A stretch of 63,995 nt of DNA, filler included, from Lenisia limosa (Eukaryota > Protista > Breviatea), in assembly GCA_001655205.1 (NCBI GenBank). It is 12 parts of 12 records of this genome, joined end to end, with 100 filler letters (N's around TTAATTAATTAA, not from the genome) between each part and the next. Parts side by side here need not be neighbours in the genome. Positions count along the whole stretch, not along the records: positions 54,072 to 58,902 come from LPNZ01007766.1; 11 more parts are not named here. One strand, 5' to 3'. The position numbers and the translations under genes are program-made. Position 1 is the first letter of the stretch. Each line of letters opens with the position of its first letter. The notes beneath the pieces are model-generated. The model saw nothing but the letters and a program-made list of their open reading frames with translations. It was not told the origin of the DNA and made no database searches. Of this stretch, positions 53,901 through 59,790 are shown piece by piece.

Positions 53901-54099
53901 ACCTTCTGATTAATTAATATTTTCAAAATTTGCTTCTTTTTATTTACTTAAACCTCTTTGTTGTCCTTCTGNNNNNNNNNNNNNNNNNNNNNNNNNNNNN
54001 NNNNNNNNNNNNNNNTTAATTAATTAANNNNNNNNNNNNNNNNNNNNNNNNNNNNNNNNNNNNNNNNNNNNCCCTCCCCCACATTCATCGGTTACTATC

Positions 54100-57013
54100 C
54101 CCTCACATTCATCTTCTCAGTTCTCTTGTTCAGCGTATTGATAGCCTTGCTGTCATTGCCTGGAGAATGGTTAGGTTGGTTCATGGTGTCCCTATGTACT
54201 AATTTATTCGTAGATTATATCGAATGAATGTATCCGTTCCAGACAAATAATGGAATTAATGGACTAATCATCAAGATATATCGACATTTGCCAATATTTT
54301 TCGGACCAGAGTGAAACCCTCCTTGTGACCAAAAAAGAAAAGTTGTTTTGGTCCTGAGTTTCTAGGCAACTACTGGGTCACAAAACCCGTGAAAAATTCG
54401 TAAACTGATCAACCGTCCTCCCCAATTCCCTACGGATATACTGGCCCATAATGCCTCCCTTCTGCTCCTTCTTTGTTAAGCGGCTGGAGTAGTAGTCTTT
54501 CGCATCAGTTTGGATCGTACCAACCTGGGGGAGTAAAAGAAACAAAAAAAAAGTGCCCACAATCCACTCTGTTGGCTAGGGGGAGTAAAACGAAGGAATT
54601 TTCGATGAAGAATATTGAAAAAAAATGGAAATTTATTCTCTCTCTTTTGCCTATTGATTCAAAAACAGTATTTTACCCCCAACAGAGCTGATTTGGGGTT
54701 TTTTTTATTCATAAATTTTCCAATTTTACCCCCCCTCCCACATTAATTACATTCTACCCTCCACCCCAAAGACCTATCATTAATTATTTAAATTTTCCAA
54801 TTTTACTCCCCCCTCAGACAGAGAAGTATTTGCCGATATTTTGGCCTCCACGTTTGACGAAGCGCTTCTGATCCAAATAGCGACTGAAAGGATGATTATC
54901 ATAGTATATGATCTAGTAGTAGGAATTCAAACGGTCCCAAAAATGACTGAATTTCTCGATAAATCCTCGAGTAATATCGATATGTCACCGGTCTTTTTCG
55001 GACCGTAGCGAATCCCTAATCATGCATGTGTGGAAAATGATGGTTCACGTGTAAAACGACAAATGACCCAAAAGTGACATTATGTTAATGGAGGGGGGGG
55101 GGGGNNNNNNNNNNNNNNNNNNNNNNNNNNNNNNNNNNNNNNNNNNNNNNNNNNNNNNNNNNNNNNNNNNNNNNNNNNNNNNNNNNNNNNNNNNNNNNNN
55201 NNNNNNNNNNNNNNNNNNNNNNNNNNNNNNNNNNNNNNNNNNNNNNNNNNNNNNNNNNNNNNNNNNNNNNNNNNNNNNNNNNNNNNGCCCAAAATCTTGA
55301 ATATGGAGGGGGGGGATAATACTTTTATTGGTCAATTGGGGTGAAGGAGGAATAATGAGCGTAAGTAAAGACAACGGGGAAACTTTGAAACAGCAAACAG
55401 GGGCAAGCTTTAGTATAGGCAACTTCCAGTTACGGGAAGCTTGTTAGATAATGTTAAGAGTTCCCGTGGTACCTCATCTCAATTGCCTTGAGGTCTCTTT
55501 CCATTTCTGACGTCATTTCGGGGGCCGTCATCTTGAACCTGGGGGGGGGGGGNNNNNNNNNNNNNNNNNNNNNNNNNNNNNNNNNNNNNNNNNNNNNNNN
55601 NNNNNNNNNNNNNNNNNNNNNNNNNNNNNNNNNNNNNNNNNNNNNNNAAACCCCCCAAAAAATCAAGTTCTTTTCTCCACAACAACAACATGATTCAATT
55701 AAGAACTCTGTTGGCTTAAAAAAGGGAAATATTTGCGAGAAATGGTGAAAATAGAGAAAGGTTGATTGACCCATGCCCCTCCCACTCCCAGGTTCCAAAT
55801 TAATGTCCTTATCCCCCCATCTCCACCCCAGGTTATGTCCTCGATCTTACCATCTGTTATCCAGTCGATCAACTGTGTCCTAAAATAATTAAGTAAAGAT
55901 GAGAAATAAAAATAAGGTTGTATCTGGACGAAGCCGTCCACATCATCACGCTAATAAGAGATATTGGATTATACAATATTAATTCACCCAATCATTTGAC
56001 TTACAATTCTATGCACACAGCTTCCTGCGTGCCTCCCCAGCATATGAAAAAGAAAAAACCGAATAAAACAATAATCAAAGAGAATAAAACAAACTAATCA
56101 TAATCTCCCCNNNNNNNNNNNNNNNNNNNNNNNNNNNNNNNNNNNNNNNNNNNNNNNNNNNNNNNNNNNNNNNNNNNNNNNNNNNNNNNNNNNNNNNNNN
56201 NNNNNCAACAAGCTCTGGAAGATTCAATTCCATATCCCTAAAGTGTAAGTAGTTGTAATCCATCTCCCAAAACATATAAGTGGTAGGGCTTCTTTGGTGA
56301 CAAAAAAAGAGGTGTCTTTTTGGACCTGAGTAAGGCCCTAGTAAGTATTTATCAATTTCATATCCATAAACATTAATCAATCCCTTATCCATAGTTATCA
56401 TGAGATTCTAAAAAAACCTAACTTTTGATATTCACAACAAGGCCGAAACAGCAGAATAAGCATATCGATATTATATGTATATCACGAGGGTTTACAACGG
56501 TCCAAAAAAGAATGGTTACAATATCCATGTTTATCAGGGCTTCATTTTGATCCGAAAAAGAACAGTAAAATATCGAAGACGCAAAAAAGCTGGGAGAAGC
56601 ACATGCAAGCATACAAAGACAGACAGAAAAGAGACTGAACAGTATCAAAACCAAAAGAAATCCAAGATCAAACACAACAGGAACTGAAAGTTAAGCCCCG
56701 CGAAGCATGCAAAAACCATGCGTACTTTTTGTAATTCTCGCTCTGCTGGAGAACAGGACCTGATTTCTTCTCGAGATATTCATCCCGTTGTTGATTTCTG
56801 GAGATCGTGTGAGCATGAAGATAGCGTTGGTGAATCCGTGTTTCAAGTTCCAATTATGGCTATTAAACCTGATTCCAGCCAAGCAAACTTGATGCGCTTC
56901 ATGGTTGAATCAAACTTATCGTCAAGAGACGACAATAATGCCGCCACGTCTTTTGCCTCACTCTTATGCTTCTCTTCGCTGATTTCACCAGCAAAGGACT
57001 GGTGAAAGGACAT
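54100..57013 (-). CDS. FCF2: FCF2/DNTTIP2-like pre-rRNA processing protein
   Basis: Spliced DNRW|FKMTAPEMTSEMERDLKAIEMR|RYLDQKRFVKRGGQNIGKYFS|VGTIQTDAKDYYSSRLTKKEQK is the Fcf2 domain (WF.M...T.E...DL..l..R...DpKRFyK; YFqvGT; fyssRLtKKe). ATG at 57013 (MSFHQSFAGE). Confidence 0.88.
54525..54819 (-). mobile_element. Type example of a putative Introner-like element occupying a whole FCF2 intron
   Basis: The intron begins GT-CTGAGGGGGGAGTAAAATTGGAAAATTT and ends CCTTCGTTTTACTCCCCTAG..TTTTACTCCCCCAG, so its ends are inverted repeats. The internal pair CTCTGTTGG/CCAACAGAG is also inverted. Homologous ends occur at splice sites of at least 7 other genes. Confidence 0.6.
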
Positions 57014-57669
57014 ATTGAAGGTTTAGTTTGTTGGTAAATGAAAAGAAATTCAGCCAGATGAATGAAAAGAGAAACAGGACTGCTATTAATTTAACGTTCC
57101 TAAATAGTACTAAATTTACGTCAAGAAAGAGGGAAACCCGTCTCCAAAAACAAAACAAAGCAGTCCTATTTACGAATTTAGTCTCTTTGGCTGGTTTAGT
57201 TGCTCCCTACTTTGAAACAATACGTTAATATCTTTCCTAAATTATAATATTAATGTAATTTAAATTGCTGTAATCATGATATCTCCTTTTACTATTCTCC
57301 CCCCAGAGAATGTTCGGGAATGATTTGGCTCGGAAGACTTTTGTTCTGGATTGATTGAGATTGTTCCTTTTAAATAGGATCAAAATGGAACTTACCTTCA
57401 AATATTTCAAGACTAATCTACATTTTTCTACAAGTAACCAGACTTCACTAGGCTATTCGTTAGTTTTATCACTATGGGTGACATTGAAGACATAGCTCTC
57501 CCCGTTGAGCGCGGAAGTGGATGCGCTGAGACTGAAATTGCTAAGAAGACATATTCCCTTGCTACTGCTCCCGACCCAAGGTCTGTGTTTGAATGTCAGT
57601 CACTTTTGAAAGCCTCCGTCACTTTTCTCCTGCTTTGGTAATTTAATCTTTGACCCTTTTCTTATTATA

Positions 57670-58828
57670 GGCGAAAATACGCGATTTCACCCTCCTCAGA
57701 TGGAACCGCGTTACCGAGAAGGTCCAACTTTCAGAAAACATTGTCGAGCTCAAAATATTCCTCCCCGTCATTGCTGCTAGCTGCCTTGCCGGTCAGTTTG
57801 TTATTGTTCGTGTCCGTGAAGGAGCCGAGCGTATCCCCTTGACCATCGCCGACTACAAGTAAGCTCCAATCTCCTCCAAACCTTTTTTTTTTACATTCCT
57901 TTGCCGTCTTCTTTTGCTTATTTTCCTTCAGTCGTGAGGAAGGATGGTTTACCATGGTCATTCAGAAGATTGGCCGTTCATCAGAGCTTATTTGCGGTGT
58001 CAAGGTTGGTTGGGTTTCCCCTTTTTTCTTCGGATATTAAACTTCTTCAAGCATATCGACCTGTCTCACACGCATGTCATCATAACATCATTGCTCCTAT
58101 TGTAATACGTTTGTGATCTTGCTTAGCAAGGCGAGGCTTTCCTTGATATTGCTGGTCCGCTCGGAGACTGCAGTGAAATCGAACTCTTCACCACCCCCGC
58201 ATCAGAGAAGGCTGGCCGTAAGGGTAAGCTGATTGTCATCTTTTGATTTTTTTTGTTTTGTTTCATCATCAGATGATGGGTGGTAATATTGTATCCTTTG
58301 ATGATGATTAGAGCTACTTCCTCTCGACATATCTTGAAATATCGACTATGTTCATAATCTTTTCGGACCGCTTGAAAGTACCACAAGTTAATAAATGATG
58401 AGCTTTTGGTAACAATATTCAGCTGTCGTGATTTGCGTCTCCGGCGGCGTCGGTGTCGCCCCTGTCCACCCCATCCAGGTTTGCGCACGTGCTTGCCCTT
58501 CTTTTCCATTTCCTTATATGTGCACTTGCTTGTGACATGATACTCATTGTTATCATATGTTTTTGTTCCAATAATTTCCATCGTTTTACCGCAAAAACAA
58601 GGCTAACCGCAGTGTTTTGGGTTCTTTGTTTTTCATATTTCCCTCGACAGAGTTGATTGAATTATTTCATGCAATTTTCCATAACAGAGTTGTTTCTTAT
58701 TGTGTCATACATTTTTCAATCTTCACCCCCCCCCCCTCAGCGTGCCCTCCATGAAGCCGGCAACCACGTCGTCTCTATCTGCGGTGCCCGTAACAAGGAA
58801 CTCGTGTTCTGGGAAGACAAAATGAAGG
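57670..58828 (+). CDS. NfnA/SudB-like FAD/NAD-binding subunit (ferredoxin-NADP+ reductase / PyrK superfamily), intron-containing, 3'-truncated; N-terminus unresolved (possible ATG at ~57386 or ~57475)
   Basis: Exons 57670-57858, 57932-58004, 58127-58217, 58423-58478 and 58741-58828 splice in consistent phase to NRVTEKVQLSENIVELKIFLPVIAASCLAGQFVIVRVREGAERIPLTIADYNREEGWFTMVIQKIGRSSELICGVKQGEAFLDIAGPLG..VICVSGGVGVAPVHPIQRALHEAGNHVVSICGARNKELVFWEDKMK. Confidence 0.9.
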
Positions 58829-59790
58829 GTGAGCAGCAGTTGCGTAGATTAGATATGAAGAACTCTTCTTCTTGTTTCTTGGTTTCTCTCATTGTTGGCT
58901 AGNNNNNNNNNNNNNNNNNNNNNNNNNNNNNNNNNNNNNNNNNNNNTTAATTAATTAANNNNNNNNNNNNNNNNNNNNNNNNNNNNNNNNNNNNNNNNNN
59001 NNCATATCATGACAAATATATCTAACTGATAAACATTTTGCAACTTTTTGGGTTGTTCCTATATTCAAAATCCCTTAAAAACCTCACAGCCTGACACTCA
59101 AATCTATGCCCTATAACATACTATCTTTGAAAACATAGTGTAGTATTCAATAAACAAAATCCCAAACATTTGCCAACATAGCATACTGCTAACATATTTT
59201 GCACCAAACTTCAAATGGAGACGTTAAAGCCAAACACACCAACCTGCACTGAAGGTATCATCGCTTCTGAGCTCTAGAGCAAAACAATGAACCAATAGCA
59301 GACACAGAAGCGTCAGGAGCCTCGTATTCACCATGATTGATGGCGAATGGAAGATGGGGAAAAGGGATCGCTAACAACAACTCAAATCTCAGCAGTGGTC
59401 CAAGATGATGATATAACTCTCTTTTCTGAAAACAAAGCGCAAGAAGGGGCGAAAAAAGGCCAAATTTTGACTAAAACAGTAAACTGGGTATCAACTGGGT
59501 GACTCTCTTGCCTTTTTCAGCGAAATTTCCCACCCCCTTCTTCCTCTCTCCATCTTAATTCAAAGAGAAAACCAAGGATATCATAGAGAGGCAGGGAAAA
59601 ACGTGAGAAAAAAGCTTCACTCCAGAGATCCACTCCCCTCACTTCCTAACCCCTCTCGGCAGACCCCTGGCAGTCAGCCTTCTTTGAATATAACACGGAT
59701 AGATCTCTTTAAAAGCCGGGTAAGTAGGATGAATTAGGTTATCATACTGACCTACTGACCTCGTCAAAGTTTGAGTTTTGCGTGGTGATA

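Follow-up and report, generated by a model that had tools for sequence, protein, structure and literature searches.

A transcribed, intron-rich NfnA-like gene in the breviate Lenisia limosa

Background

Flavin-based electron bifurcation is viewed as belonging to anaerobic bacteria and archaea. In the NfnAB enzymes of these organisms, NfnA receives, by way of a [2Fe-2S] cluster, the high-potential electron that leaves the bifurcating FAD of NfnB and delivers it to NAD+; the flow can also run the other way. To our knowledge, eukaryotic homologues of Nfn are known only as unannotated genes or as "sulfide dehydrogenase" genes in a few protists. The "sulfide dehydrogenase" of diplomonads (the Sud of Spironucleus salmonicida and of Giardia) has a bacterial Nfn ancestry, which is attributed to lateral transfer (PMC6405883, PMC3916229). 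The S. salmonicida Nfn is the fused form called "pattern D", the Giardia homologue has no [2Fe-2S] domain, and electron-bifurcating activity has not been demonstrated for any eukaryotic Nfn homologue (PMC6405883). Judging by the Giardia copy, a eukaryotic homologue need not be a true Nfn enzyme. The genomes of diplomonads are nearly intronless, with 3 and 8 introns per genome (PMC5874029).

We analysed a window of 63,995 nucleotides of the breviate Lenisia limosa, that is, the whole stretch made of twelve parts of the assembly GCA_001655205.1. The part which comes from LPNZ01007766.1 (positions 54072-58902; G+C 40.7%, hence AT-leaning) carries, on the + strand from 57474 onward, a gene whose product resembles NfnA. 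Given the diplomonad precedent, this gene belongs to an already known kind: it and the diplomonad Sud genes are both eukaryotic and of bacterial Nfn ancestry, a likeness drawn here from published descriptions. As far as its sequence tells, it is set apart from them by its intron density (at least six introns within 676 coding bases, against 3 and 8 in entire diplomonad genomes), by an N-terminal extension of bacterial type and by an insertion.

Results

Structure, splicing and surroundings of the gene

We used two public runs from one study, X1 (DNA-type) and X2 (a polyA-selected metatranscriptome), whose contigs were aligned to positions 56206-58902. An RNA contig of X2 (record 7, 567 nt), which starts at 57417, joins the positions 57580|57700, 57858|57932, 58004|58127, 58223|58423 and 58478|58741. 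All five pieces skipped by the RNA begin with GT and end with AG; they are removed precisely from polyA RNA and their removal leaves the frame open. RNA depth is zero in all introns and in the flanking intergenic DNA, and the X2 signal is therefore not due to carry-over of DNA. The exact removal of the introns from polyA RNA means that the NfnA-type gene is transcribed and spliced as a eukaryotic gene.

The first exon consists of an untranslated part (57417-57473, from the start of the RNA contig, with an in-frame TAA at 57435 ahead of the ATG) and of a coding part (57474-57580) which encodes the initial Met and a 35-residue acidic extension with a conserved Cys. Its donor, after 57580, is in phase 2. 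Intron 1 (57581-57699, 119 nt, GTCTGT..CTCAG) ends at the acceptor ..cctcctcAG|ATGG (57699/57700). Exon 2 (57700-57858) encodes the FAD-binding barrel with GQFVIVRV and ERIPLTIAD, and is sufficient to match the NCBIfam model NF004862 on its own (3.9e-14). It is followed by intron 2 (57859-57931, 73 nt, GTAAGC..TTCAG), exon 3 (57932-58004), intron 3 (58005-58126, 122 nt, GTTGGT..CTTAG) and exon 4 (58127-58223). The latter carries the GPLG motif and an insertion of 11 residues, which appears as a gap in alignments with PDB chains and which the RNA keeps. An earlier donor in exon 4, whose use would drop this insertion, was considered and is ruled out by the RNA. Intron 4 (58224-58422, 199 nt, GTAAGC..TTCAG) precedes exon 5 (58423-58478), where PDB alignment places the NAD-binding glycine motif SGGVGVAP. 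Intron 5 (58479-58740, 262 nt, GTTTGC..CTCAG) is spanned by the RNA with a short side of 21 nt, and leads to exon 6 (58741-58828), which encodes GNHVVSICGARNKELVFWEDKMK and is supported by both RNA and PDB alignment.

Only the first 74 nt of intron 6 (58829-58902) lie in the piece. An exact look-up with a mechanical open reading frame of the opposite strand led us to a contig of an ENA assembly, L165 (2958 nt), which shares 2601 identical nt with the window and extends 160 nt past 58902. On L165, intron 6 is 138 nt long (GTGAGC..CCCAG), and exon 7, of at least 96 nt, translates as ..TDDGSYGRKGWVT.., which fits the next conserved block of NfnA (TDDGSYGxKGFVT); intron 6 is placed by homology only, and exon 7 by frame and homology rather than by RNA. 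One open frame is thus kept across seven exons and six introns, five of which are proven by RNA to be spliced. The protein in hand amounts to 225 residues, about 80% of the length of NfnA; both assemblies end in exon 7, some 70 residues before the position of the C-terminal Asp(Cys)3 [2Fe-2S] motif. An exact DNA search with exon 6 across JGI metagenome contigs gave no match, and did not yield the continuation of the locus.

An earlier note on this DNA, made from the sequence, had described five phase-consistent GT-AG exons beginning at 57670. The RNA contig splices at the predicted places and bears out the exon model, with the exception of its beginning: the first of those exons starts at 57700, 30 nt further, and the stretch 57671-57699, from which ten residues had been read, is intron. 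The motifs quoted there (GQFVIVRV..GAERIPLTIAD, DIAGPLG, GGVGVAP and GNHVVSICGARNK) do lie in one frame of the + strand within GT-AG exons. The same note had pointed to extra coding-like sequence at 57386-57590, which turns out to be the real exon 1.

A second expressed gene lies on the - strand (56206-57115), head-to-head with the NfnA-type gene, whose 5' end is some 300 nt away. The second gene has its ATG at 57013 and continues below 56206, and its product begins MSFHQSFAGEISEEK... An RNA contig of 896 nt removes from it the introns 56798-56888 and 56237-56724 (CT..AC on the + strand). The runs of N in this part of the piece, at 55106-55286, 55553-55647 and 56111-56205, are flanked by homopolymers of G or C, and L165 reads across the last of them as a run of about 14 G. 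Each gap is therefore a place where the assembly broke at a homopolymer, a frequent feature in this genome.

Introns 5 and 6 end in copies of a dispersed repeat

The last 60 nt or so of intron 5 are a copy of a module ended by a poly-C run, and the last 62 nt or so of intron 6 are again such a copy. The module also occurs in intergenic DNA, where local alignment finds one copy at 54679-54740 (+ strand; CAACAGAG..ATTTGGG..T-run..AAATTTTCCAATTTTAC, then poly-C) and a second, shorter one at 54789-54818 (+ strand; ending in poly-C, then TCAG). The end of the module reads AAATT.TCCAATTTTAC, then a run of C, then (T)CAG. In introns 5 and 6 this C run and the CAG which follows serve as polypyrimidine tract and acceptor. 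Pairwise local scores between module copies range from 24 to 37, against maxima of 12-15 for shuffled sequences; the intron 6 module reaches 37 against a shuffle maximum of 12, and the short copy at 54789-54818 scores 15-18 with introns 5 and 6 (shuffle maxima 12-15). Another DNA contig of X1 shares 58700-58738, which belongs to the module part of intron 5.

The earlier note had remarked that one intron ends in an introner-like module. This observation holds and can be extended, as two adjacent introns end in copies of the same dispersed element. In their 5' parts, introns 5 and 6 have no relation to each other. What the alignments show are apparently repeat-derived acceptor ends, and not introners making up whole introns. 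Since a bacterial ancestor had no introns, all six introns count as gains: all would have been gained after the transfer of the gene, two of them with 3' ends supplied by the dispersed repeat.

A second family of dispersed repeats (TTTTCGGACC..) is built around ATATCGA..TTTTTCGGACC..GAA.CCCT. Its copies lie in intergenic DNA at 54297-54320, 54994-55017, 56316-56339 and 56533-56576 (inverted), and a weak one is found in intron 4 at about 58322-58377, with a score of 19-22 against a shuffle maximum of 16-18. Other DNA contigs of X1 match 56536-56576.

The product is of NfnA/SudB type

When compared to the PDB, the peptide of the five exons gives an E-value of 6e-31 with NfnA of Thermotoga maritima (4ylf_A) and of 3e-30 with the small subunit of NfnI of Pyrococcus furiosus (5jca_S). 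The PyrK chain 1ep3_B gives 7e-5, some 26 orders of magnitude worse than NfnA; PyrK shares the FAD/NAD(P)-binding ferredoxin-reductase-like fold family, and its match is far weaker. Among NCBIfam models, the peptide matches NF004862, the model of sulfide/dihydroorotate dehydrogenase-like FAD/NAD-binding proteins, with 163 bits (E 7.7e-48, profile positions 2-146 of 281); like the match to T. maritima NfnA, this lies far outside what chance would give. The score is below the full-length cut-off of 220, because the query covers only half of the profile, and does not amount to formal membership. The model of the fused NfnA-NfnB (PRK12778) gives 160 bits. The competing models stay far behind: 69 bits for the best PyrK model, about 94 fewer than NF004862, then 39 for hydrogenase gamma and 31 for AsrB. 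In Pfam one can notice only weak signals of FAD_binding_6 and NAD_binding_1; a weak Pfam signal is usual for the NfnA-type family. The assignment to NfnA/SudB rather than to PyrK, as proposed in the earlier note, is upheld by both the profile scores and the E-values.

Over the part seen, the order of domains is the same as in T. maritima NfnA (4YLF/4YRY) and P. furiosus SudB (5JCA). The motifs ERIPLTIAD (R-x-P-L-T), DIAGPLG and SGGVGVAP are in register with those of 4ylf_A and 5jca_S, and the common set comprises GQFV.VR, ERIPLT.AD, GPLG, GGVG.AP and GN.V.S..GAR.K.L.FWED. Judged from these alignments, the 225 residues are an FAD-binding barrel and most of an NAD-binding Rossmann domain of NfnA/SudB type.

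The gene differs from the two prokaryotic proteins in several respects: identity is about 45%, an N-terminal extension of 36 residues is present, a Cys stands before GQF, and the gene holds at least six spliceosomal introns. A Ser replaces the first Gly of the NAD-binding motif, as it does also in P0127 (see below) and in L045/L046. Finally, the 11-residue insertion kept in the RNA, which is located just ahead of the NAD-binding glycine motif, is absent from bacterial NfnA. Either the insertion or the Ser could alter function. A bacterial NfnA-like protein, P0198 (MCX5714766.1, 632 aa), has a long insertion at the same spot; its C-terminal half (about 300 residues) is not NfnB-like.

The N-terminal extension

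The 36 residues of the extension include 7 acidic and 4 basic ones. They align with the extensions of five bacterial relatives (P0239, P0129, P0132, P0124 and P0199), along a shared pattern made of a Cys, then [FY]-S/T-[IL]-x-x-[TA]-P-D, then N-x-[IV]-x-[EK]-K. The homology makes the extension of bacterial origin. Together with the acidic composition, it argues against a presequence of mitochondrial type, and so leaves the cytosol as the default location: the protein probably works there. The organellar targeting extension that had been suggested for the sequence of exon 1 is thus not what this exon encodes.

The bacterial subgroup resembles the present gene in the extension pattern, in the Cys before GQF and in an EGW block, and differs from it by an identity of only 40-48% and by showing no introns. 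Its sources are one contig with ParB and a GGDEF protein, one metagenome-assembled genome and three short metagenome contigs. Across this subgroup (loci L002, L003 and L004), the Cys of the extension is invariant, often after His-rich stretches, and a second Cys precedes GQF. Some members of the subgroup have such His-rich stretches before the Cys; the present gene has none. The two Cys, that of the extension and that before GQF, might form an additional metal or redox site.

Relatives and a second eukaryotic copy

Among 5.8 billion clustered proteins, a search limited to a range of lengths was topped by bacterial NfnA proteins some 280 residues long, with identities of 43-53%. A filter-free search of 1.84 billion representatives with exon 2 gave, among the matches listed, identities of at most 67%, mostly with fragments, and revealed no close eukaryotic family. 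A protein-guided scan of JGI metagenome contigs with the same exon gave at most 71% (at most 63% over nearly the full exon), and here too the continuation of the locus did not turn up. Among GTDB genomes, a bacterial query found only bacterial and archaeal nfnA, with at most 59% identity to the query, and the ESM Atlas gave bacterial clusters only. The nearest relatives, 50-58% identical, are bacterial nfnA genes placed beside nfnB or fused to it, and one eukaryotic contig with a fused nfnAB.

This eukaryotic contig, L001 (3 kb, from Logan, in a separate public run), encodes the protein P0127, 58% identical to ours over 178 columns, which is the highest identity found. Positions 261-2725 form a fused NfnA-NfnB of 783 codons once three introns are removed (40, 35 and 38 nt: GTATGA..CACAG, GTATGT..CGTAG and GTATTG..TATAG), and the changes of frame match the contiguous segments that tblastn aligns to bacterial fusions. 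To judge by these introns and this frame, L001 is from a second eukaryote carrying an Nfn-type gene. Like the present gene, it has one Cys ahead of GQF, another within the N-terminal extension and a glycine motif in its VSGG form, and in trees P0127 is the nearest to our gene by path, or tied for nearest. Unlike it, L001 has introns in the NfnB part only, none being in the NfnA part, and lacks the 11-residue insertion.

We built a maximum-likelihood tree from 55 rows and 209 columns. The spliced peptide falls among bacterial nfnA sequences, on a long branch (0.7), in a clade with P0127, P0003, P0239, P0129 and P0132 whose support (91/75) is suggestive but not decisive. This position fits a transfer followed by a gain of introns, in line with the lateral acquisition proposed earlier and with its claim of spliceosomal introns in a bacterial-type gene, which polyA RNA has directly confirmed. 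The best tree pairs the eukaryotic P0127 with the bacterial P0003 (support 96/82), but a clade made of the two eukaryotic sequences is not rejected by the AU test (p 0.3). One transfer and two transfers are thus both possible, and the two genes may have been acquired separately.

The neighbours in the tree are all linked to nfnB and not to pyrD. A gltA/NfnB-type gene begins 2 nt after P0003 and gives 420 bits with TIGR01316 (NADPH-dependent glutamate synthase/NfnB). P0132 is the frameshifted head of an nfnA-nfnB fusion, on a bacterial contig of 105 kb with ParB, a GGDEF protein and TsaD; P0239 comes from a metagenome-assembled genome; L003 and L001 are nfnA-nfnB fusions. We rejected the idea of deducing the fused or split state of the present gene from its relatives, as the clade contains both states. 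The EhNO1/2 proteins of Entamoeba were dropped as comparators: they are described with FAD and 2[4Fe-4S] domains, and are NfnB-like, not NfnA-like.

Discussion

The reading which we favour, and in which we have fair though far from complete confidence, is that of a genuine expressed nuclear eukaryotic gene of bacterial nfnA or nfnAB descent, the product of which is likely the NAD(H)-side module of an Nfn-type NADH/ferredoxin:NADP+ oxidoreductase. Its role, as predicted from the family, would be the transfer of electrons on the NAD(H) side, as in bacterial and archaeal NfnAB, and it may take part in the anaerobic ferredoxin/NADPH coupling implied by the earlier note. The product would either stand alone as a subunit or make up the N-terminal half of an NfnA-NfnB fusion such as that of L001. 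That the gene was transferred laterally, and in which direction, is inferred, as are an NfnB partner, electron bifurcation by the enzyme and its place in the cell.

The most serious competitor, which we regard as possible though rather doubtful, is that the NfnA-like fold is used without bifurcation. The product would then be a simple reductase module that passes electrons from NAD(P)H to an acceptor, working by itself or together with a GltD-like protein; the acceptor might be polysulfide, oxygen, iron or ferredoxin. This is modelled on the role proposed for the diplomonad "sulfide dehydrogenase" and on non-bifurcating paralogues of Nfn. No Nfn activity has been demonstrated for the eukaryotic homologues so far described and that of Giardia is devoid of the [2Fe-2S] domain (PMC6405883), the Sud of S. 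salmonicida has been proposed to oxidise NADPH in sulfur metabolism (PMC3916229), and the 11-residue insertion and the long branch of the present gene point the same way. However, among bacteria the genes closest to it are nfnA-nfnB pairs or fusions of the canonical kind, and both its FAD and its NAD motifs are intact.

We find it improbable that the transfer left only a relic, a decaying or truncated gene which is transcribed without giving a working protein. Such a relic would agree with a protein seen only as far as exon 7, with the long branch and with a low RNA depth (5.6 on the NfnA-type gene, 30 on the neighbouring gene), but not with seven exons in one open frame, with conserved motifs which are all kept, with six introns precisely placed, five of them proven spliced, or with a coding GC3 (0.56) that exceeds the GC of the introns (0.37). 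Still less probable is a PyrK-type subunit of a class 1B dihydroorotate dehydrogenase, acting in pyrimidine synthesis: the fold superfamily is the same and PyrK models and structures do match weakly, but at no more than 69 bits against 163 and with an E-value of 7e-5 against 6e-31, while every neighbour in the tree is tied to nfnB. Finally, bacterial contamination or an assembly chimera could be feared, since the assembly is of metagenome type, the same run contains bacterial contigs and the longest record reaches 177 kb, but it is effectively refuted by the five introns cut exactly at GT..AG in polyA RNA, and also opposed by the splicing of the divergent neighbour gene, by the identity of the DNA in two independent assemblies and by the fact that no bacterial sequence is more than 58% identical.

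Returning to the Nfn-type module of bacterial descent, one can go further and suppose that an intron-rich eukaryote which is not a diplomonad possesses a complete bifurcating NfnAB transhydrogenase, in whose gene every intron is a datable gain and at least two introns owe their existence, or their acceptor, to a mobile element of about 60 nt ended by poly-C. This fuller picture we can put forward only as a tentative and rather unlikely one.

The present locus and L001 suggest that more eukaryotes possess the enzyme than published work indicates, with an expressed copy in an intron-dense genome quite different from those of diplomonads. Current views are thereby extended and not overturned. The gene also offers a clean case of intron gain, as its bacterial ancestor was intronless and its adjacent introns 5 and 6 share a repeat-derived acceptor end. 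If the reading in terms of a mobile element is true, it would be a natural record of the creation of introns, driven by a repeat, in a transferred gene.
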